A DNA stretch of 64,000 bases from Amoebophrya sp. A120 (lineage: Eukaryota; Protista; Dinoflagellata): contig CAJINV010000004.1 in the NCBI GenBank assembly GCA_905178155.1, positions 8,330,882 to 8,394,881 of the forward strand, in the 5' to 3' direction. A program made the translations under genes and the position numbers. This document shows positions 1-46,822 of the stretch, piece after piece; position 1 is the first letter of the stretch; each line of letters starts with the position of its first letter. Under the pieces are notes generated by a model that saw only the letters and a list, made by a program, of their open reading frames with translations, did not search any database and was not told where the DNA came from.

Positions 1-1334
1 CGAAAAATACAAAATCAGGTCAGTGTTCCGATGATGAAAACAGATCGATACAAAATTATCAGTAGTGTGCTGTTGTAAATCGATGCAAAATTTGTAAATG
101 TTGTATAGGACGAAAGAACCCGTGAATGCAGTCAATGCAGGTAGTAATAATACCGAGAAAGTAGTGATTACAGTTAGCAAATGCAGAGTGGGTAGAAAAT
201 TGAAAAATTACAAAATTCGAAGGTGTACAACCGAAAAATTGCCGCAAGTGGTTGATGAAAATTGTGGCGTCTAGAAATCAAACCGTTCCCAAAGCGTGTC
301 ACCTGATAGTACGCTGTGAACGAATGACGCAGCAAAAATTGTTTCAGACAAAGTAGTTTATACTATCGAAATGTTTGCGCTACTACTTTTCCGTGCGAGC
401 AGCAATTTTGTGTAAGACAAAAGTTTTGATGGTGTTCGGTATTATTCGGCTTTGCGTACAAACTGGCGTGGTTGCTTGCACCGTCTTGCAATAGAATTGG
501 GCGGTAGTTTGATACAAAATCGAATGGAAACCTAGTTGAAGGATTGGTTTGGAAAGTTGAAAATTGTGGGTCTTGTCAGCAGACAAAATTTGGTGATGAA
601 TTAGCCGCTGTTGTGTGGGGGTGCGTTGCAGTTTCGGTTTGAAGAATTGTCAAAATCGACGAGTACAGGTGAAGTAACACCACCAGGAAAAGAGAAAAAG
701 GCACTACTTACCATATTTATTGCGACGAAAATATCAAATCGTACGAAGAGCAGCTTCTACCGAAGGTTAAAAAACCTCAAACCTTCGCTCTCGAAAACCG
801 ATAAAAATACTTGAATCCATTTTCCATATCATCCGAAAGAGCAGACGAAGCGCTTCGACAGGGCAAACGAAGATGTTGGACGTGGTGCTATCATAATTAG
901 TACCGAACTTTCTTCACCCAAAACAGCGCCAACGTGCTGTGGGGGTTCTAGTGCTGCTTCAAAACCGAAATACTTTTTACGCAAAGCTGTTTGCTGCGAA
1001 GAGGCTTTTGCAGATAGGGAAAAACCGAATTTTCATTTCTATATGAGAAGTTAGTGGACCGAGATAAATTTGGACTTGGACGACGCGACAGCAAATATAG
1101 TTTTTTCAACGAATATAACAACACCTGGGAGCAGACGAACAGCCGATATTGTACTTCTACCGAAGAAGATGGTGTGAACACTACAGAGCGCAACGAGCAA
1201 CGGAGTGCAGGCTACCGATAGAACTCAAGTTTCGCAAGAACCCCTGCCCGGGCTTGCTGTTGAGGCAGATTTAATATTTTCTCCTGGGAGTTGTTGTGAA
1301 ATTTTGATTTGTCGTCCAGTAAAAACCTGTATTA

Positions 1335-4300
1335 TTATATCCACCTCGCTGCCTCATAAGCCTGGATGTAGTCGAACCTAATCCGCTTGAGCATCTTCAA
1401 AAACTGATACTCCATCGTGGAGACGTTATTTCGATCGAAAAATCGATGAAAATAAACGTCGCACAAAGTCGCCAAGTACAGATTCGGCAAGTGGTCGTCG
1501 ATCATGCTATCAACTGCAAATATGTCTTGGTCTGGAAACTTGTGATGCTGAAATGTGCATGATTGAAATCCTTCCAAGTGCAGCCAAGCATGACAAGTTT
1601 TCCGAACACTTTCTCAACCGCAGTCCGCATGAGAAGTTGCGCTTTTGTATGACAAAAGGAGGCGTAGTTTTGTTAGTCATGATGCAACACAGATTTTACA
1701 GGAATGTCGGACTTGCATATACAAGTTCAATGCTCCCAGACCCAGACACATTTGCATTTCATACATGCGCAAGCCGAGCAAAATTCGCCGGTAGTGCTCC
1801 CCGTGGTTTCGGACCCAAAAACAGGTGGGCGCCGCCGTACTGGGGCGAACTTGCAAGTGGAGGCAGAACTTCCCCGGGGGCCGCGGGATCTTGCTGTAGT
1901 CGTGGGTCTTCCGTTGTTGCCCGAAGAGGGTGCCGATGTAGTCCACCGCTTGGGTAAAGTAGGAGGTTTCGCTAATCTCGTCCGCGAGGCTGAGTTTGCG
2001 ATGAGGGGTGCATGGCGGTGAAGTAGATCAGATGTTGCTTTGCATGTAATAATCAGCATGACACGGAAAAAGATCTTGGTCCTCGGGCTCGGCATGGTTT
2101 GGTGTGCTTTCTATAGATGAAATGATTTTGTCTTTGTCAACCGGAACAGCATCAGCATGAAAAAAAGTTTTTCAAAATGAAAACTATACCGGTCAAAGCT
2201 TTCCATGCTGAGGGCCGACACGAAGTCCTTGCCGCGGACGACGCCCAAGATGCGCGGGTCGTTTGTTATCGAGTAGGAAAATTTAGGCGCGAGCGCAGCA
2301 CATTTGTCATGTACAGCGCAAATAGTGCGTCGCTTGATAACTGTATACATTAACACGGTCTGGCGGTCGTCAGATCGATGCAACTGTAATATCTCGCCCG
2401 CAGTGCACACACCCATTGTTTTTTTTGAAAATATTAAGTACATTAAACGCTTCTAAAAAAATCAAAACACGCACGCCCTCAACTCGCACTTCCTTCCCAT
2501 CCGATAGCCATCACGGGGTATTTCGCTGCATTCGCCGCACGACCCGGACTTCTTCCCGCAACTGTTCCCCCCTGCTCTGCGTCGTCGTCATGATAGGCAA
2601 TCGCGGGGCTCCCGAAAAGGAACAGCCTCTTGTTCTCGATTTGGGGAAATTTCCAGTACACCAAAGCCACGGTTGCCGCTCCCAGGGAGTGTCCCGTGAA
2701 GACGAATCTGTAGTCCGGGTTCTTTTTCAAAAAGCGCTCCACCCAGAACCGGATCAACTGCAAATATGTCTGGGTCTGGAAGGTTGCCAGACTTGTCATG
2801 CAGGTTTTATTCCATGACCCATGAGGTCTGGAATGCGGTACCCAGCATGACTGATTCTGTGGCGTGGTCTCTATCATGCCTATCCTGCATGAGAAACTCC
2901 CTCTCAACTTGGTCAAAAGCGGACAGCTTTTGCTACTCATGCAACACAGATTTTTGCATGGTTCAGATTTAGCATGACAAGTTCCACTCTTCCAGACCAA
3001 GACATATTTGCATTGGATAAACCGGATCCGACCGTAGACAAACTCCGCGGACTTGACGAATCCTTTGTGGGTGCGGAACAAAACGCGAACCTCCGTGTTG
3101 TCTTCGTCGGATGGTGTTTGTCGTTGTCCATCTTCAGTGGAAGTTGTCTTTGTACGAGAAGAAACTGTGCTCGTCGCCTCGCCGGTTGTTGAACCTGCCG
3201 TGGGTACTAGCGAAGACAAATTTTTTGGTTTACTATCAGTACTATCCTTTCTCCGTATCAACTGCAAAAATGTCTGGGTCTGGAAGATTGCCAGGTTTGT
3301 CATGCATATTTTGAATGACCCATGATGTCTGTGATGCATGCCCTAGCATCACAGATTTTTCGCGGACTTTGTGATGCCTCTACCGCATGACAAATGCCCT
3401 TTCCGCGTAGCACAAACTGGAGTGCTTTTGCTGGTCATGCAATACAAATTTTTTTAGAATCCAGAGACAGCATTACAAGTTTAGAATCTTCCAGACCCAG
3501 ACATATTTGCATTTGATACTCCGGTGCCGTTCCCGATTCCGTTCCGGACTCCCACTGTTCGGACGGGAGGAACTACTCCCAGGCGGTGCAAAATTGACGT
3601 CGCTCTGGTCTATCAGCAGAGGCTCGTGAGGATTTCTACCTGCAGTTTTCTTCTCGATATTCAAATAAGCTCGCGAAGATGAGGACGTGCTGCTTGTTCC
3701 GGGATAGCCGTTTTTCGTCGTGCCCAATTGATGTTGCCCGTATACAGCATGATCTCCCTCGGGCGACGAGGGAACAAATAACCCTTCGTCTCCGTATATC
3801 GCTTCGTCCTCCGGCGGCCGGATTTTGCGTTCGGGTTTTGGGATTCTAGTCTTCTGTACGGATTGACCGGAAGATCTGGTGCTGTTTGCGGAGGAGCCGC
3901 GGGAGGGTGGTGCCACTACAACAGCAGCTCCTGTGCTGGTCGGCGTTTCTGCTCTCGGTTCCGGCTGAAACAACGTCGAAAGCTGTCCGCCCTGTAGAAC
4001 TCCTCTCCCCCGTTCGTCATAGTCTTCTTTGTTCGGTGATTTTGCGCCCACAAATTCGTTGCCGACGTAGTCGATTTCGGGTAAGCTTTCCTTTCGCTCG
4101 CTCGCCGGCGGACCGAGGATGGCATCGTCGAGGCTGTCGTGTCTGGAAGATGTTGGGCCGTCTTGTTCTACTACCCTCGGTGGTGTACTACTAGCAGTTC
4201 CACTCTTGTTTTTCGGTGCGGGAAAAAGCGAACGCGCCTTAGTATTCGCTTTCACCTTCACGACGTCATTGCCCACCTGCACCTCCGACGGCTCGTCGGA

Positions 4301-7300
4301 AGTGACTAGAGGATCCGCACTATCCTAAGCAAAAACGTCCCCACACCATAGTCAAGTTGGGAATCTAGCAACACAAATCTCCAAGTTTTGGGAGTTGTGC
4401 ATGACAAGTTTCCCTCTGCAGTGTAGTGCTGGTTGACAAGGGAAGCCGCATTAGAAAGCCACTTTCTCATCCTGTTTATAGCATTACAAATTCCAAAACA
4501 CGACTGGTAATGCATCTCATGGAGCTGCGCATTACAAATGTTCCATTCCTGTCATTGCGCATTTGCATGACAACTCTGGTGTGGGTACGTTTTTACTCAG
4601 GATACGCACCAGAAGCGACATCAGGTTCCTGATCGTGAGGTCCTCCCGCGGCTTCCCCCGAGCTCGCACGTCGCCTCAACGCTTCTGCTTCTTGCGCTCG
4701 TCTCTTCTCCTCGTCCCGGGCCTTTGTCAATTCCTGCAACGGGTCCACGCCAAACAGGGCGCTCCCCGCCTTCGGGAACCGGACCGCGAAATCGACTTCC
4801 TCCGCCGCAATATCTGTCATGACGTCTTTCCAAGCCATCGACCCCCGCACAGTATCAACTGCAAAAATGTCTGGGTCTGGAAGGTTGGCACTTGTGATGC
4901 TAACTTTGGACTCTAAAAAAATCTGTATTGCATGACCACCAAGAGGAGTCTAGTTGGTGCTACGCGGGGAGGGCATTTGTCATGCGGAGTAGACATCAGG
5001 AAGCCCTCTAAAAATCTGTGATGCTAGGTTGCGCATTACAGATATCCTGGGTCATGCAAAATATGCATGACAAACCCGGCAACATTCCAGACCCAGACAT
5101 TTTTGCATTTGATAGACAGAGAGAATCAACCACTTCAGTGTGTGGTTCACCGAAAGCACAAACGTATCCAGTGCAAATATGTCTGGGTCTGGAAGGATCC
5201 GAACTTGTGATGCTGCATTTGGATACTACAAAAATCTGTATTGCATGAACAGCAAAAGAGGTCCAGTGTTTGCCACGGAGAGCGGGTAATATTTCTCATG
5301 CGGTATATGCATGAGGAAGCCCTCACAAAATCTGCGATGCTAGGGCATGCATCACAGACGTCAGGAGTCATGCAAACTGCGCATGACAAACCTTGCATCC
5401 CTCCAGACCCAAACATATTTGCAATGCGTAAAACGCTGGCTCGTACATTTCTTCCGTGAACGCAGAAACCAGAATGGGATTCGCCGGTAGAAAAGCGTTG
5501 GTCTTCGTCGGACTGCTTGTACTGCTGGTAGTGGGTGCAGCAGCAGCACCTCCCGTCGCAGCTGTAGTGGCTCCAGTGCCATGGCGGCCTGGTACCGTAG
5601 TGCGGCTTGCGGTTTTTGAATTTTTCCGGCTTGATGTTCCGGGTTTGCTCGGCGATTTAGACGAAGGAGAGCTTGTTCGCGATAAAAATTCCTCTTTGCT
5701 CGTGGTTCTTTTCGACGACGTGGTCCCACTCTGAGAGGTGTTGATTTTCTTCTTGTCCACACTAGATGTTGAAGAGGACTTCTGCTCTGCTCCCGGTAGA
5801 AGTTCTTGCCCATCTACAAATCCAGATGGAAGCTGCGAGGACGTCGTCACTTCCGAACTCGGTTCTATTCTTTTCTTCCTCTGCCACTGCGCGCTGTCTT
5901 GCTTCGCGCCCACGAGGGCGAGGAAGGCCTTTTGGTTCAGCACCTCGTTTTCCAGTTGGTCCATGTTCACCTTCATGAACGCCCCGGCCACCCGTATCGT
6001 AAGGAAAAATCCACCCTCCCCATATTGCAAACGGAGTTTGTGATGCTGTATTTGAGTACACAAATCGACTTGTAATGCCAGAAGGCCAAGAGCCGCAGTC
6101 GTGGCCTCGTTTGCAGGAAATTTGTCATGCTGTTTCCCACTTCCAGCCGCCTCCTGTCATGCTGAAGACGCAAGGCTTCCCCATGCCAACCAGCCCGACA
6201 GCCCGCATCTTTTCCCTTCTAGCATGACGAAGCTGAGTTGTGACAACAAATCTGCATCACAAATTTTCGTTTCGGTATGGGGAGGGGAGATTTTTCCCCA
6301 CAATAACCCACGTTGCCGCACTGTCCACATACCCCTCGTACATCGGCACACCGTACACAGCCCGCATGTAGAGACAGGCGATCATGTATCCTGAGCAAAA
6401 ACGTCCCGGCCCCCTAGTCAAGATGGGAAACCTGCTAAACAAATCTCCAGACTTTGGGAGCTGTGCATGACAAGTTTCCATCTGCAGTGTAGTGGTGGTT
6501 AGCAAGGGAAGCTTCGTGATTTCTCATCCTGTTTACAGCAGTACAAATGCCAAAACACGACTGGAAATGCCTCTCATGGAGCTGCGCATTACAAATGTCC
6601 CTGTCATTGGGCATTTGCATGACAACTCTGGGTCGGGGACGTTTTTACTTAGGATATCATGGTCTCGATGAGGATCGACTTTTCCCGCAACACCGCTGCG
6701 TTATCGAACTGCTTTTCGTACAGCTGCGAGTGCACGTCCCGCAGCCGCCACATCACGGAAGGGTCGAGAAAGGAGAAGAAGTCCTGCGCCCCGTGTCGTC
6801 GATTGGACAGCATGGAGAGCAAGGTGGTAACCGTGTCCCACATGTGCGACGAGCTGCCGCCCGTTTCATTTGTCTGCTCGTGGGCTGGCCGGTGGATCGG
6901 CCGGTTTTGCAGGTCGTCCGCCGCCGCGGCAACCACGTCCTCCTTGTTTTCATCTATGGTTGTAGGGTCAGGCGGGTAATTATTATTCCGGCTGTACGGG
7001 AAAAGCAAAAGACTACTAGACGCTGGATCTTCACTACCAGACGCAGCAGCGCTTTGACTCAATTGCGCACTACTGGTCGTCGCACCGCCGAACCAATCAA
7101 AGTAGCTATTATCGGTGTCGTTTTCCGTGACAGGCGTCGTGTGAATCTGCTGTGGATAGTCGTCGTCGGGGTAGGTATGGGCAGATATTTCTGGTGGTTC
7201 TGGTTCTCCATCAACACGACCTAGAGGTGCGGCACGACGACCAGGGCCGGTGCCACTAGTTGTACCAGGTGTTGAAGAGTTTGAGTCCTCAAAAGGTGGT

Positions 7301-39582: not shown

Positions 39583-39833
39583 TATGAAATGTAAAAATGT
39601 CTGGGTCTGGAAGAATGCAAGTTTGTCATGCTTGTCTGGCATGACTCGGGAATCTGTGTTGCATAGGCACGAAAAAGCCTTCTTACCTGTCATGCAAAAA
39701 CGCAGTTTGCCATGCGGAATACGTAAGACATGGCAGCCAAAAAAATTGTCATGCATAGCTGCGTATTGCAGTGCGTCTATCATTCATTTTTAGCATTACA
39801 AGTTTCCAGTCCCAGACATTTTTGCATTTGATA
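39583..39833. mobile_element. Introner family A (predicted 3' UTR)
   Basis: TIRs; TSD taccg. Confidence 0.9.
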
Positions 39834-39839
39834 TACCGC

Positions 39840-42800
39840 TTACATCTCACACCTGCGCTTCAAATCCTTCCGCATGTTTTCCCGGAGTCGGTGGCACAGC
39901 TGTAGGTTATCAAGTGCAAATATGTCTGGGTCTGGAAGAGTGTAGACTTGTCGTGCAGGTTTTCCATGACTCATGAGGTCTGGAATGCGGGACCTAGCAT
40001 GATAGACTCTGTGAGGTCTCTGTCATGCCTATCCTGCATAAGAAACTCCCTCCCAACTTGTTCGAAAGTGGACAGCTTTTGGCGCTCATGCAACACAGAT
40101 ATTTGCATGATTCAGATTTAGCATGACAAGTTGCGATCTTCCAGACCCAGACATATTTGCAATCCATACAGGTCTCGTCTCTGCAACGTGACCCGGCTTC
40201 CGTGCGTCGCGATCAGCAGCGAGTTTGCGCAGAGGAGTGTCAAGCCCTGCTCCATCTATCGCAAGAAAAAACTGTTACAGTTACACATTGTGTTGAAAGA
40301 ACCGCAAGACAGACGACCTTTGTAATGCGGGAAATGCTTGCGAGCCTCGTTTCCTACGTCTTTTTCCTTTTGATCTTTGCATTACAAGTTTTCTCTTCCA
40401 CACAGAGAAAATTTGTGATGCAGAAACTCCAACAGATGTGTAACTGTAACACTTTTTTCTTGTGATACCATCACCTTCTGAAACAGCGTGATCGCCTGGA
40501 GACTCCACTTGCGGTGGGCGTAGCCGAGGTCTTCCTGCTGCTCAAGTATGGAAACAGCAAAGAGCAGGCGGATCGATTTGATGTATATGCGCATTTATTT
40601 GGTTGTGCAGGTGCACTTACGATGTTTCTTGTTCACGGACATCACAGCAATAATATTCATGCACAAGGAGCACCCGCCGCATGACAAATCCACAGCGGTC
40701 TTTGTAGTTGTCTCCTTTGATATGCCGCACCGCACGCCGGAACGCCAGCTATCACAGGAAAAAGTGTTAACGTTAACGGAATTTGTGATGCAGCAATGCA
40801 TCACAAGACATTCCAAAATTTGTAATGCATAGCATGCATACTGGGCTACATTTGTGATGCATGGCTGCAATCTGTGAAAACCGTTAACATTAACACTTTT
40901 TCTTGTGATACCAGCTTAGAAAACATCACGTTCGTCATGGACTGTTTGGACTGGAGGAACCTGTTTTGATCGTGATTCAAAATCCTATCAACTGCAAAAA
41001 CGTCTGGGTCTGGAAGGTTGGAACTTGTGATGCTACCTTTGCACACTAAAAAAATCTGTCTTGCATGACCAGCAAGAGGAGTCTAGTTTGTGCTACGCGG
41101 GGAGGGCGTGTGTCACACGGAGTAGGCATCAGGAAGCCATCTAGAAATCTGTGATGCTAGGTCGTGCATTACAGACATCCTGGGTCATGCAAAATATGCA
41201 TGACAAATCTCAGAATCTTCCAGACCCAGACATTTTTGCATTTGATGAATCCGTGTACGTGTTCGATGTAGTTCTTTGTTTAGCGATTGTGCACGACAGA
41301 CATCAACAGCTGACATCAGATAGTAAAAGCGATTTATGCACCACTGAACCAACATGACCTCCATGAAATTCGCAGCAGATTTAAGTAGTACGCGATCTCC
41401 TGTTCGATCCGTTTCTGTTGGTGCAACCCCACGCTGGTAGCGATGACGCGCTTCCGCCCGGCCAGATACGTTTTTGCGCCGATCGGGCGCCGAATGTTGA
41501 CTTGCGGGTCTTCATCTTTCGCGACCCGGAGCACGGAGGTCTTTATGCATTGCAAATATGTTGCCTGGCACTGGAAGGAGGGGCACTTGTCATGTCATGT
41601 CTGGATTGTGCAAAGATTTCTGTTGCATGATTACCAAAAGGAGGTGTCCACTTTTCAGCAAGTTTATTTGCGGCAGTTTCTCATGCAGGAGGGGTGTGAT
41701 GTTGAAGATATCACAGAATCTGTCATGCTAGGTCCTGTATGCCATACAAGATGGGTCATGGAAAACATGCATGACAGGTCTCGCAATCCTCCAGACCCAG
41801 ACATACTTGCATTTGATAGTCTTCTCCCGGAGCACGTTCGCATTGTTGGCGACGTCACTCGGGTCGAACTGTTTTTCGTTTTGGCTTGCGTGAAATCATG
41901 ATTTATTATCAGCATCACAAAAACCGGTAAAAAATTCTCGTTCTAGTAGTACGAAAAATTTTCTTTGGCTCCTGTGTCGTGCTGTGTGCTGAACATGGCT
42001 CGCAATCGTATGAATGATTTTTACGCAAAATATTACCGAGATCCGATCTACTGTTCATCATCATCTCACAGCGCGCCATACATTATCAAGCTATACCCTC
42101 ATCACTCCCCCTTTCTTCAGCTCGAGCGGGCCGGCAACCCGTGGCTGGATCTGGTTGTGATCCACCGTAAGAACCAAACTGGTGTTTCTCAGCATCTCCT
42201 CGTCTGCATCGAAGTTATTTTGGGTGCCGTCCGTAATATCCTTGTTGCCTGCGGGGAACTCACCGTCACCCCCGTGATCGCCTTGCAGCTCTTCGTCCCC
42301 TTGTAGCTGCTCGAACGTCGGCGCCTTCAGCGGCTGGTGCGCCGGTTTCTTCTTTTTCGCGTTGTTCTGGCGATTGCTCGTTTCAAAAACGCCGGCAGAG
42401 GAGGAGGACGACGCAGCGGCACCAGAGGTCTTGTTTCCCGCGGCGGCAGCTCCCGCAGCGACAGCTGCTTGCTCCCGCCCCCGTTTCCGCTGCATGTAGA
42501 CGGGCATACGGGACGCTGCTGCACCGACACTTTGGTTCGACGTTTCTTGGTCCCGCTGACTGTCCAGCAGTCGCTCCTGTACCGGTTCCTCCTCGCGGGT
42601 CGTCGTGGTACCGAGCTGCTTCTTCTTTGTCTTTATGCATTCCGAAAGCTAAAGTATTTTCGTACTGGCCGCTATAAAGTTCTTTATTTTTGACAAAAAA
42701 GGACAAATATGGCGTCGATGCAGATGTAGATGCAGTTTGCAGCAGCGTGTGCATTTGACACATCAGACATACATCAGGCTGTTTTGATATCATGCAGGTT

Positions 42801-45800
42801 GTTTTGGTGCCATGCTCATGCAGTACGTATCACAATTCATAGTCCGAGACTGAGTACTACCAGATACTTTTGCACGGCATAGTGTTGAATGTACTTCCGC
42901 TCTTGCCTTTCGCCTCCTTCGCCGGCGGAACATCACCCTGCTCTGCAGCAGCAGCAGCCTTTTTGGCGTTTGTCACCGTCTTCTTGTTTTGCTTGTTTCC
43001 CGCAGCAGGCTTGAGAATCTCGTCCGCCATCAGGTCGTCTTCGAGATATGCAGTGCTAAAGCACCGTACTAGTATAAATTGCATTACAAATCGGCTTAGC
43101 ATTACAAATTGACTTTGTAATGCGGCTTTGCCTTAAGAAAAAAATTTGCAATGCATAAACGCAATTGCTACGAGTCCGATACTTTTGCACAGGATACGAG
43201 ATCGATGGCGCCGATCATTTCCGGGGAGTCGTCGTCAACACCGTTCAAGCTGTTCTGGAATTCGTCTTCCGGACTGCCCGCATCGGAGTCGACGTCCTGC
43301 AACACCGGAGAGGAGGGAGAACCGGCGGGGATCTTCTTCCCTTGTTTGGTGGAATTATTCTTCCCATAATTTTTCTTTCCCGTGGACTTGCTGTTGCGCT
43401 TCTGCTTGTTCTGCCCTTGGTCAATCTGCTTCTTCAACCTCTCGGGCATTTTATCGTCGGTGTGGGCAGGAGCTATGTTGTTGCCACCCTCGTCGAGGAG
43501 CGGTGGTGCCACGGAAGTGTTGTTTTTCCGGGTCGACGAGGTGGTCGTTGCACCCCCAGACACCGGTTCCTGTTGGCGGTCTTCACTGTTTCTCGCGATA
43601 CTCGTGGACACGTTCGACAGACCGGAGGTTCTCTGAAGATTCTGCGGCTTCTTGTCAGAACCTCCGTTACTGCTCGACTTGTTCTGCTGCGCTCGTCGGG
43701 AGGTCGTCGTGGTGTCGGACGCGGGTCGTCCAGCTTGTTGTGCAGCGCCGGAGGACGGAGAGGTTGTGCCAGCGGTACCGGCAATAGTCGTGGCAGCAGG
43801 ACCCCCTACTTCATCGCCGGCGATGGTGTTGCTTCGATATTGTTCTTCCACGCCGCTACGGCCTACGCTTTCGTTCTCCTTTCCCTTTGCTTCCAACACG
43901 CTGACAATCTTCTTGAGTCCGGAGGTGTCGTGCAGTACGTGCTCCTCGCAGTTGGCGAACCCGTGAACGACTTGCTGGAAGGTGTGTGCTATACAGTGCA
44001 AAAGCATCGTGCTCGTACTACTTAATCGCGGCCATGCATTACAAATCCCGGGCTCAAGGCAAACCCGCATCACAAACTTCATTTCTCATGCTGAGAAAAT
44101 TTGTCATGCGATTCGTACTAGTACGATGCTTTTGCAATGCATATGTGCGTCCGTGGTCGCAGCGCAGGTGTGCGCAATCTTCGACATCATCATGGCCTTG
44201 ATCTGCAGTTGCCGCAGCGACATCTATCGCAAGAAAAAAACTGTGTAAGCGTAAGTCTGTGATGCAGAAGATGCAAAACAGTTACACTTGTCATGCTGGA
44301 CATGCGTCAGAGCCTCTTTTCGTACGTGTTTTCACGTACTAGCCGCGCATGACATGCTCTCTCTGTCATGCAGAGCAAACTTGTGATGCTATTCCTCCAA
44401 GAAAGTTACACTAACACAGTCTTTTTCTTGTGATAACATCTGGCTCTGGTTTACTTCCCGGCACCACCGATATTCCTCGTCCGTGATCCATGAAGAGTCT
44501 TTCGCCCACTCCACATCGTTCATGTTCATGGGCAGGTGAAACTCCTGGAAGATAAATTCGGTGGTTCTGTTATCCTGTGTAATAACGTCCCGACTCCAGA
44601 GTTGTCATGCACATTTGCAATGACAGGAACACTTGTAATGCGCTTCCACATGACAGGCATTTCCACTCACGTTTTTGCATTTGTAATGCTGCAAACAGGA
44701 TAAGCAGATGGATTTGTGATGCGGTCGTCCTTGCTAACATGCACTTCTACACTACAGACTGCAACTTGTCTTGCGTGGCCTCCAAAACTTCTGGATTTGT
44801 GTTGCTAAGTTTCCAACCTGACTATGGTGTGGGGACGTATTTACTCAGGATATCCGTCGTCGTCTTCGTCGTCCTCCCCGGCAGCGTACCGCGCGACTTT
44901 CTTCGCGGCTTCCCCATTATCAAATGCAAATATGTCTGGGTCTGGAAGATTGCACGGCTTGTCATGCACATTTTGCATGACCCGTGATATCTGTGATGTA
45001 TGCCCCAGCATCACAATTTTTTTGCGGGCATCTTGATGCCTATCCCGCATGAGAAATCCCCTCTCCGCGGAGCAAAAACTGGACGTTTCTTGCTGCTCAT
45101 GCAATACAGGTTTTTTTCGATTCCAAAAATAGCATCACAAGTTGCATTCTTCCAGACCCAGACATTTTTGCAATACATACCCATGCGTTTTAAGCAAGTT
45201 CTTGAACACCCGCAGTTCCCGCGCCTCGTCCTCGTCCTCTTCTTCGTTCGCGTCATTCGTGGTCTCGTTCTGGCTGGGAACGCGTTTCTGCTCTTCCTGC
45301 TCCACGACTTGTTTTTCAAAAGAACTGCTGCCGTTCTTCCCTTGTTCCCCCGCGGCCAATAAAGCAGCTTTACTTTTCGGCTTGGACGACGTCGACTTCG
45401 CTCTTTTCTTGTCCCCGACCAGCTCGTCCTTGAGCACGCTCTTTTTGAACTTCTTGCTACTGTTTCCTTTATTCTTGTTGGCCGACGCAGTAGAGGGTAG
45501 CTTCGAGCTTTTGTTCTGCTGCTGGGGCACGACCCCACCGACCAGCCCTCGCTGTTGCAGCGGATGTTGATCTACTTCTTCTGCAGGAACAGCCAGTTGT
45601 GGTGTATTGTTGTTGGTCGAGTTGCTCGTGCGGGGGTCTTTTTTCGACGAAGAACCCGACGTGTTGTTCGGCTGGACGGTGTTGTTCGGCGTAGTGCTGC
45701 CTCCCCCGCTGGTAGAGGTTCGCATGGCTGCCTGCTGTTGCAGCAGCGAACTTGCCTGTCCCAGAATCTCCTTCGCGTGCCTGGGCCGCGGAAGTGTAGT

Positions 45801-46822
45801 TGTACTGTTGGTGCCGCTTACAACAACCGCTCCGGAGGACTTCGACGTTCGGCCCCCGAATTTATTGTTGGAGTTTTGCTGTGCAGGGCGCCACTGAGAC
45901 GAATTGGGGTTGATCGTTTGCTGCGGCTCCACCATCAGGGAAGTAGTAGCAGAAGCAGTAGCAGCGCCGCTGCCGAGCTGCGGCTGCCGCAGGTCGGGGA
46001 CGAGCGAGGATTGCACCACCATGGAAGATCCGGCAGATCCATTCTTCTGGAAAGAACTCGGGCTGTTGGGGTCGTTGACGACGACCAGGCTGCCGGTACG
46101 GAAAATCACGTCCGGTTGCTGGTGTCCTACTTCTACCTGCTGCTGCGAGAGTTTGTCGTAGTTCAAATTGTTCAGCTGCGGGGCGTGCAACGCCGGCGGT
46201 TGTTGTCCTGCTCCGGGAGCTGCACCACCAGTTGTCCGGAAAGTAGACGAAGACGAAGCTGCAGCACTCGCAGGTTGTCCACCGTCGGCTTTGCTGCGCG
46301 GCTGTTGCGACGTCGAAGCAGGCACTTTTCCCCGTGTAGTTCCTGCTGCTTTCGATGCGCCCAATGTCGTGGTCACAGCAGCACTCCCTGTAGCGCCACT
46401 TCCCTGCGTCGCACCGACGGCACTACTGCTCGCCTTGTTGGCCGGCGGTGCTTTTGCATCGGTGGACTTCGCGTGGCTGTGTCGGGCCCGGACAGTATCC
46501 TGTGGAAAAACCAAAAAACTACCCACTGCGTTACTCTTGTTTACCTCGCGCGACTTCTCGTTTCCGTATCCGTTTGACTATATTGAAAAGTAAAATCCCA
46601 AAGGGAAGTTTGAGTAGAGCACGTTTCCGTTTGACTATAGCTACTTTCTTTTCTTCCAGACTTCTCACAAGCATGACCAATTACAGTTTCCAAACACCTA
46701 CTTAGTGTAGAACGCCGCCCATGCAGATTTTTGCATGACAAGTAGGAGTACATCTTGTGGAATGGGTATTAAGTACTTAGCGGTTTTTACCCAGGATAAA
46801 CGTCATCGATGAGCCGGGCCAT
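39840..46822 (-). CDS. Histone H3-fold (CenH3/CENP-A-like) protein with roughly 1,100-aa N-terminal extension
   Basis: Spliced C-terminus FSKLAFRRAVRH..KWSLQAITLFQKVMEQGLTLLCANSLLIATHGSRVTLQRRDLQLCHRLRE aligns with H3/CENP-A helices 1-3; three junctions (about 40580-40720, 41279-41378, 41897-42095) are degenerate. Confidence 0.75.
39908..40168. mobile_element. Introner family A
   Basis: TIRs; TSD taggt/caggt. Confidence 0.9.
40257..40467. mobile_element. Introner family D
   Basis: TIRs; TSD ccatc. Confidence 0.92.
40750..40910. mobile_element. Introner family D variant (161 bp)
   Basis: TIR tatcacaRgaaaaagtgttaa; TSD ccagc. Confidence 0.92.
40986..41247. mobile_element. Introner family A
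   Basis: TIRs; TSD aatcc. Confidence 0.92.
41544..41818. mobile_element. Introner family A
   Basis: TIRs; TSD gtctt. Confidence 0.9.
42634..42881. mobile_element. Degenerate introner family F
   Basis: TIR remnants; TSD gtctt/gtgtt; frame restored. Confidence 0.72.
43047..43196. mobile_element. Introner family F
   Basis: TIRs; TSD cgaga. Confidence 0.9.
43990..44143. mobile_element. Introner family F
   Basis: TIRs; TSD tgtgc. Confidence 0.92.
44225..44435. mobile_element. Introner family D variant
   Basis: TIRs; TSD acatc. Confidence 0.92.
44571..44852. mobile_element. Introner family B
   Basis: TIRs; TSD tctgt/tccgt. Confidence 0.88.
44918..45179. mobile_element. Introner family A
   Basis: TIRs; TSD cccat. 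Confidence 0.92.
46496..46798. mobile_element. Degenerate introner family B
   Basis: tatcctg...caggata ends; removal plus 5 nt gives MARLIDDV|RARHSH in frame. Confidence 0.65.

Follow-up and report, generated by a model that had tools for sequence, protein, structure and literature searches.

A candidate centromeric histone with a giant, mostly disordered tail in the dinoflagellate parasite Amoebophrya sp. A120

The centromeric H3 variants (CenH3s) Cse4 and CENP-A carry N-terminal tails of ~20-135 aa and have C-terminal ends of only about three residues in Cse4 (QFI) and six in CENP-A; the CENP-C-binding C-termini of CenH3s are short and hydrophobic. Dinoflagellate chromatin is largely non-nucleosomal, it is a long-standing question how dinoflagellate chromosomes are attached to the spindle across the nuclear envelope, and to our knowledge no dinoflagellate centromeric histone has been firmly identified. 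Here we describe a gene in a 64,000-nt stretch of the genome of Amoebophrya sp. A120 (assembly GCA_905178155.1, contig CAJINV010000004.1, positions 8,330,882 to 8,394,881), hereafter the window. A first-pass annotation, made from the letters of this DNA, had placed there a CenH3-like histone fold at the end of a very long tail (minus strand, 39840-46822). Amoebophrya A120 is a syndinean parasite of dinoflagellates with an assembly of 115.5 Mb (Farhat et al. 2021; PMC7789003), and its genome is filled with non-canonical introns that carry inverted and direct repeats, termed introner elements; histones and centromeres are not discussed in the genome paper (PMC7789003).

The closest functional precedent is the CenH3 of Dictyostelium discoideum (H3v1, DDB_G0291185), a 619-aa protein whose N-terminal domain is an orphan and whose loop 1 is short, and for which a centromeric location was demonstrated by green fluorescent protein (GFP) and chromatin immunoprecipitation (ChIP) (PMC2995078). 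The protein from the window, CAD7947091.1, is longer (1,189 aa) and, like the Dictyostelium histone, shows no marked extension of loop 1. Within the lineage itself, Marinov & Lynch (2015) found numerous elongated H3 variants with divergent tails in dinoflagellates, none of which form a clade with known CenH3s; CenH3s in general do not come together as a robust clade (PMC4751559). Their survey included three H3 variants in an Amoebophrya transcriptome, none of which was described at a size of 1,189 aa (PMC4751559). CAD7947091.1 resembles these variants in its lineage, in the combination of an H3 fold with extended length, and in a tail unlike that of H3. Like Cse4 and CENP-A, it has a tryptophan at the position of F84, lacks Q68 and T107, has an insertion in loop 1 and keeps the loop-2 RVT motif, and Cse4 was its best match among the listed solved structures. 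Unlike them, it has a tail of ~1,090 aa, a basic C-terminal extension of 13 residues, and only 29% identity to canonical H3 (over 97 aligned positions). CENP-T, too, has its histone fold at the C-terminus, behind a long disordered N-terminal region, but the fold of CAD7947091.1 is that of H3 by sequence and has no PF15511 match.

CAD7947091.1 is encoded by a single 15-exon gene on the minus strand, which runs from the ATG at 46822 to a TAA stop codon at 39842-39840 and contains 14 introns. Sequencing run X1, which was only guessed to be RNA and whose contig is spliced, yielded one contig of 4,895 nt (word depth 21) in which 13 joints remove introns 2-14 and link 14 of the 15 coding exons. The segments skipped in this contig are 39904-40169, 40252-40467, 40542-40722, 40745-40910, 40959-41389, 41539-41818, 41869-42096, 42629-42881, 43042-43196, 43985-44143, 44220-44435, 44566-44852 and 44913-45179. 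Joined accordingly, the exons give a minus-strand reading frame of 1,185 open codons with the TAA as its single stop, and the phase is kept at every joint. The read comparison covered positions 39700-45699 of the window; the joint between exons 1 and 2 lies outside this span and rests on the public annotation and the length of the contig. When exon 1 (46822-46800) and intron 1 (46799-46492) were added, the 3,570-nt coding sequence gave a translation that equals, letter for letter, the public protein CAD7947091.1 (GSA120T00022924001; hereafter also P0001), which is recorded for Amoebophrya sp. A120 as an "unnamed protein product". The span, the ATG and the stop codon had thus been read correctly in the first-pass annotation, and its estimate of ~1,230 aa is replaced by the real length of 1,189 aa. 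Upstream of the ATG there is an in-frame stop codon with no further ATG in between.

The exons were searched singly, and the search with exon 2 (441 aa) returned one public protein, P0001, which became the basis of the later protein-level work; joining of exons by coordinate was used for stop counting and for the equality test against P0001. The raw RNA runs X9-X11 gave 2, 2 and 0 partly fitting reads at the locus. The RNA contig exits the stretch at 39834, with 1,115 nt more on that side. This 3' part of ~1.1 kb is AT-rich, and no long open reading frame (ORF) lies downstream on the same strand. The 3' untranslated region is long and contains an introner-type intron (39583-39833, minus strand), which begins 6 nt past the stop codon, carries an inverted repeat and is spliced out. 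A search of P0001 against its own genome revealed no paralogue; the gene is single-copy and is expressed as spliced RNA. The protein was already public under no name, with PF00125 among its precomputed annotations, and no paper discussing it was found in the literature.

From its sequence, the C-terminal ~100 residues almost certainly represent an H3-family variant histone fold. The PF00125 (Histone) profile, which the first-pass annotation had proposed as a check, matched residues 1096-1176 of the whole protein (E 1.2e-8; 35.7 bits, cut-off 26.4), and this match and the 4,895-nt spliced contig support the proposal of an H3-like C-terminal fold on a long unrelated tail, encoded by one gene. 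When all solved structures were searched by sequence at E up to 10, 173 distinct sequences were returned, and all 60 best matches that were listed are H3 or CenH3 chains. Best among those listed was Cse4 (7k78_A; 32.7 bits, E 2.3e-7); an H3/CENP-A chimera scored 30.6 bits, other Cse4 chains 29.2-30.0 bits, yeast H3 29.7 bits, Xenopus H3 27.3 bits and human CENP-A 26.1 bits. A Pfam scan of the whole protein at E up to 10 gave PF00125 and one weak domain of unknown function only, and there was no match in NCBIfam. The look-alikes of residues 1060-1189 in the ESM Atlas are H3 clusters. AlphaFold 2, given all 1,189 residues and an alignment of seven rows, predicted helices at residues 1070-1120, 1131-1159 and 1166-1188 in a helix-loop-long helix-loop-helix layout, with predicted local distance difference test (pLDDT) values of 58-81. 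In a Foldseek search, all of the top 50 matches shown were H3 or CENP-A chains, with weak scores (E at best 0.07) because the query is 1,189 residues long. A wide search of the fold with VIA-align gave generic helical matches only, with Z below 8.

A Pfam scan of ten in-frame exon pieces taken singly gave no histone match, because the pieces are only 20-49 aa long. A six-frame PF00125 search of the genome found 18 histone pieces and missed the CAD7947091.1 gene, and our own H3 profile gave no new H3-type loci and reached just E 0.09-0.23 for its exons.

The sequence details of the fold were obtained by aligning residues 1040-1189 with 45 full-length canonical H3 sequences. The alignment places R1112, W1129 and S1152 at Q68, F84 and T107, respectively, each of which is 100% conserved in the 45 sequences, and it bears out the three substitutions noticed in the first-pass annotation. 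Of 61 nearly invariant H3 columns, 24 are kept. The residues through which H3 contacts DNA, pairs with H4 and pairs with the second H3 are largely kept as far as the main contacts are concerned: K64, R69, R72, H113, R116, V117, T118, D123, L126, R129 and R131 are present, and R63S, C110I and K115S are altered. Loop 1 has one residue more than canonical H3, the minimum accepted by a published criterion (PMC7052976). The longer loop 1 announced in the first-pass annotation stands to the extent of this one residue, and the large insertion drawn there is an artefact of a translated intron. Its "long loop" (HIKGDNYKDRCGF... / HIKGDNYKDRCGFVMRRVLLVHEYY...) corresponds to intron 12 (40542-40722), a non-canonical intron that is skipped in the RNA contig and not present in P0001, and that is preceded by a 22-nt micro-exon. 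The spliced loop-1 region reads ...KLAFRRAVRQQQEDLGYAHRKWSLQ..., and the true C-terminal sequence reads ...KRIEQEIAFLQSKQSMTNVMFSKLAFRRAVRQQQEDLGYAHRKWSLQAITLFQKVMEQGLTLLCANSLLIATHGSRVTLQRRDLQLCHRLRENMRKDLKRRCEM. Likewise, the motif given as EIAYY resulted from read-through into intron 10; the true join is EIAFLQSKQ.

All exons of the fold lie on the minus strand and are present in the RNA contig. Exon 10 (41390-41538) encodes a basic pre-fold segment and the start of an alpha-N-like helix (..RKRVIATSVGLHQQKRIEQEIA), which is predicted from residue 1070 onwards. Exon 11 (40911-40958) encodes alpha-N/alpha-1 (FLQSKQSMTNVMFSKL), and the PF00125 match begins here, at residue 1096. Exon 12 (40723-40744; joints 40744>40911 and 40541>40723) is the micro-exon, which contributes AFRRAVR of alpha-1 with the change of Q68 to R. 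Loop 1 and the start of alpha-2 (QQEDLGYAHRKWSLQAITLFQKVM), with the tryptophan at F84, are encoded by exon 13 (40468-40541). Alpha-2 and loop 2 (QGLTLLCANSLLIATHGSRVTLQRRD), with T107 changed to S and with H113, R116, V117, T118 and D123 kept according to the H3 alignment, are encoded by exon 14 (40170-40251). The coding part of exon 15 (39840-39903) adds alpha-3, the 13-residue basic C-terminal extension (QLCHRLRENMRKDLKRRCEM) and the TAA. It was also observed that the 22-nt coding micro-exon lies between two non-canonical introns and is spliced correctly in the RNA contig.

The N-terminal tail of ~1,090 aa is mostly disordered, and 937 of the 1,189 residues of the protein have a pLDDT below 50 in the AlphaFold 2 model. 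Its composition favours S, T, A, G, Q, N and K, and residues 401-500 form an acidic block. The tail begins with exon 1 (46800-46822, minus strand as for all exons), which encodes MARLIDD and the first 2 bases of V8. Exon 2 (45180-46491; residues 8-445), present in the RNA contig with a 100% match to P0001, encodes an S/T/A/G/Q-rich disordered region, and residues 13-424 have a pLDDT below 50. Exon 3 (44853-44912; joints 44912>45180 and 44565>44853) encodes an acidic stretch (EAAKKVARYAAGEDDEDDDG). A helical island spans residues ~426-567: residues 426-455 have a pLDDT of 52-66, and residues 480-567 are helical, with values of 71-81 over 481-540. The start of the island is assigned to exon 4 (44436-44565; TTEFIFQEFHLPMNMNDVEWAKDSSWITDEEYRWCREVNQSQM), and it continues through exon 5 (44144-44219) and ends in exon 6 (43197-43984), where the disordered tail resumes. 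An ordered-looking island had been noticed in the first-pass annotation, and the peptide quoted for it is present at residues ~468-501, within the helical part of the AlphaFold 2 model. No Pfam match was found for the island, the ESM Atlas gave no usable look-alike for residues 420-575, and VIA-align returned generic helical bundles only, with Z of ~6. The tail continues in exon 7 (42882-43041) and exon 8 (42097-42628), which has a phase-0 end ...GGVMR; exons 4-8 are all in the RNA contig.

The tail is linked to the fold across intron 8 (41869-42096, minus strand; 228 nt; joint 41868>42097). The link had been described as crossing one decayed intron with an ambiguous boundary. The intron is indeed there, but it is a canonical GT-AG intron (ends GTATAG...AAACAG) that is spliced out in the contig, and exon 9 (41819-41868; FDPSDVANNANVLREK), also in the contig, begins with FDPSDV. 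The first-pass annotation had also raised the alternative of two genes, the first ending at a TGA near 41856. This TGA is out of frame, and the alternative therefore fails.

The tail appears to have no counterpart elsewhere. Exon 2, searched against 1.84 billion representative proteins, had no relative except P0001, and the tail matched no kinetochore family or any other family, in agreement with the earlier view that it is unrelated to the H3 tail. MELT, RVxF and SILK motifs were all absent in a motif scan of the tail. Fusion to a kinetochore scaffold, as suggested in the first-pass annotation, is unsupported because the tail has no family match, relative or motif of these kinds; the tail may still serve in docking of some other sort. 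A search with residues 1040-1189 for long-tailed relatives (654-2,080 aa) returned the protein itself only. In a profile search for relatives of 50-158 aa, canonical H3 swamped the results and some exon rows were misaligned in the profile. A metagenome scan with P0001 revealed no relative.

We tentatively regard CAD7947091.1 as the CenH3 of Amoebophrya A120, which is the best single reading of the sequence and makes the protein a candidate. Published CenH3 criteria include one or more residues inserted in loop 1, divergence of both the tail and the fold, and the loss of the glutamine in alpha-1 and of Q69, F85 and T108 in Met-inclusive numbering (PMC7052976, PMC7598501). In CAD7947091.1, Q68, F84 and T107 are absent, loop 1 has an insertion, and the tail cannot be aligned with that of H3. 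Among the H3-type proteins of the genome, it alone has the F84W change that is typical of CENP-A and Cse4, and it is the only one whose Cse4 score equals or exceeds its H3 score. CENP-C homologues have been reported in dinoflagellates (PMC9418836), and a CenH3 is therefore expected in the lineage. Most likely, the protein would pair with one of the genome's H4 variants and wrap DNA in a nucleosome-like particle, its specific role would be that of the parasite's CenH3, and the mostly disordered ~1,090-aa tail, with its helical island (~426-567), would extend outwards from the particle and offer a surface for docking. It is unlikely that the tail and its island also take over the role of a CENP-C/CENP-T-type linker that directly ties the centromeric nucleosome to outer-kinetochore complexes at the nuclear envelope; if this is true, the protein would rank as the largest of the H3 family described so far and as a fusion of a histone with a scaffold.

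Several findings weigh against a centromeric role. The lead of Cse4 over the best H3 in the solved-structure search is only ~3 bits, and the 13-residue C-terminal extension is long and basic. No orthologue was found in the searches by exon 2, by residues 1040-1189 and by the metagenome scan. Exon-by-exon genome searches revealed no CENP-C cupin or Scm3 domain, which says little because the same type of search missed the fold of CAD7947091.1 itself. Above all, the published features fail to pick out one gene. At least six further H3/H4-type loci were found in the genome with the PF00125 search and our own profile, several of them in open frames of 263-472 aa. Two of these, L002 and L004, carry divergent H3-like folds. 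L002 (G000:C2:10155654-10158923; ORF 481-1875, plus strand) is a 464-aa frame ending in a fold with Q68K, F84L, T107C, a loop 1 longer by ~3 residues and RKT in loop 2, and it is a rival CenH3 candidate by its sequence. L004 (G000:C2:12427542-12430793; ORF 1417-2187, minus strand) is a 256-aa frame that lacks Q68 and T107, keeps F84 and has a loop 1 longer by ~9 residues. As L002 shows all of the sequence features and L004 part of them, indeed most, the standard criteria do not single out CAD7947091.1. Nor does the long tail point to the centromere, because other H3-type genes here also carry long N-terminal extensions: besides L002, this is the case for L016 (G000:C4:5216500-5223500; ORF 3051-4379, minus strand), in which a 442-aa low-complexity frame leads into an H3 fold with canonical hallmarks, encoded in three exons. 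The rival loci and the missing orthologue are the reasons for holding the CenH3 reading at no more than tentative strength.

About as likely as a CenH3, CAD7947091.1 may be a lineage-specific, non-centromeric H3 variant, one of several elongated variants in Amoebophrya. Such a variant would mark, for example, gene-array boundaries or nucleosome-retaining regions among DVNP-packed DNA, and the role of the true CenH3 would fall to L002, to L004 or to a gene that escaped detection. The number of other H3/H4-type loci and their extended frames favour this possibility, as do the loss of Q68 and T107 in L002 and L004 and their longer loop-1 insertions (+3 and +9). The same holds for the many extended and divergent dinoflagellate H3s that form no clade with known CenH3s (PMC4751559), and for the trypanosomatid H3V, which shows Q68 loss and a divergent tail and is non-centromeric (PMC7052976). 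On the other hand, F84W occurs within this genome in no other H3-type protein, and no other one fits Cse4 as well as it fits H3: L002 and L004 score ~10 bits better against H3 than against Cse4, alpha-2 is H3-like in both, and L004 retains F84. L002 and L004 are paralogous, with RRDP[WF]..KRF before alpha-1 and YGKD after alpha-3 in common, and the L004 ORF had no match as a query in the indexed protein database, its own annotated product included. Of the remaining loci, L001, L009/L011 and L007/L008 (= L016) keep Q68, F84 and T107, with L001 the most canonical.

It is very unlikely that the protein is a functional analogue of CENP-T, with a C-terminal fold that would bind DNA without forming part of a canonical octamer and a long disordered N-terminus to which outer-kinetochore complexes would be recruited directly. 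The two share an architecture in which the histone fold comes last, after a very long disordered region, chicken CENP-T was among the weak structural matches in VIA-align (Z 5.7), and the apicomplexan relatives lack a recognisable CENP-T and have divergent linker proteins (PMC9418836). However, PF15511, the CENP-T fold, gave no match at E up to 10 while PF00125 was above its cut-off, and the listed structure matches are all H3 or CenH3, which speaks against the CENP-T family assignment that the first-pass annotation had itself raised as an objection. The residues of the H3-H3' four-helix bundle are kept, and the motifs MELT, RVxF and SILK are absent from the tail. An artefact, in the form of two adjacent genes merged in one contig or of a decaying gene with an accidentally long frame, is highly improbable: a contig spanning two genes is no proof of one transcript, the RNA nature of run X1 is a guess and runs X9-X11 gave no usable reads, but 1,189 codons are open across 14 precisely removed introns with the phase kept throughout, intron 8 is removed at GT-AG with a continuous frame, an independent public gene model is identical, and there is no ATG-initiated alternative start near the fold.

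The introns of the gene show the features typical of this genome. Twelve of the 14 have non-canonical ends, start with TAT or TTAT, and carry terminal inverted repeats of up to 37 nt and short direct repeats; the other two are GT-AG introns. At the joints of the introner-type introns, 1-6 nt fit either side, as reported for A120 introners (PMC7789003). Intron 1 (46492-46799, minus strand; 308 nt) is non-canonical (TTATCCTG...CAGGATACTGT) and has a short terminal inverted repeat. Introns 1, 3 and 6 begin with TATCCTG, and introns 1 and 3 also end with CAGGATA. Judged by these ends, they seem to make up a short-repeat introner family of their own, apart from the TATCAAATGCAAA...GTCTGGGTCTGGAAG and TATCACAAGAAAAAG families. 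For intron 10, canonical GT-AG borders are an alternative (cut +2; 40961-41391; 431 nt), and a complete introner-type inverted-repeat pair lies inside it (arms 40987-41019 and 41214-41246). Its sequence suggests that an introner lies nested within an intron of greater age, or that it is an introner whose own ends fell out of use. Elsewhere in the genome, locus L013/L019 (G000:C3:2183004-2183219) contains a histone fold in a 328-aa frame that scores 30.1 bits with the CENP-T_C/H4 profile and 26.4 bits with the H3 profile; going by these scores, it may belong to the elongated H4 variants that have been described from Amoebophrya.

The analysis establishes the gene and its expression as spliced RNA, together with a fold of the H3 family and an orphan tail that is giant and mostly disordered. 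CAD7947091.1 thereby provides a concrete, expressed CenH3 candidate, with L002 and L004 as its two rivals. The A120 assembly is compact and chromosome-scale, and a validated CenH3 would therefore permit direct mapping of the centromeres by ChIP or by cleavage under targets and tagmentation (CUT&Tag). If the protein is centromeric, its ~1,090-aa tail would nearly double the record held by Dictyostelium and would bear on the function of CenH3 tails. If it is not, it would still be an extreme case of the elongated histone variants of this lineage.

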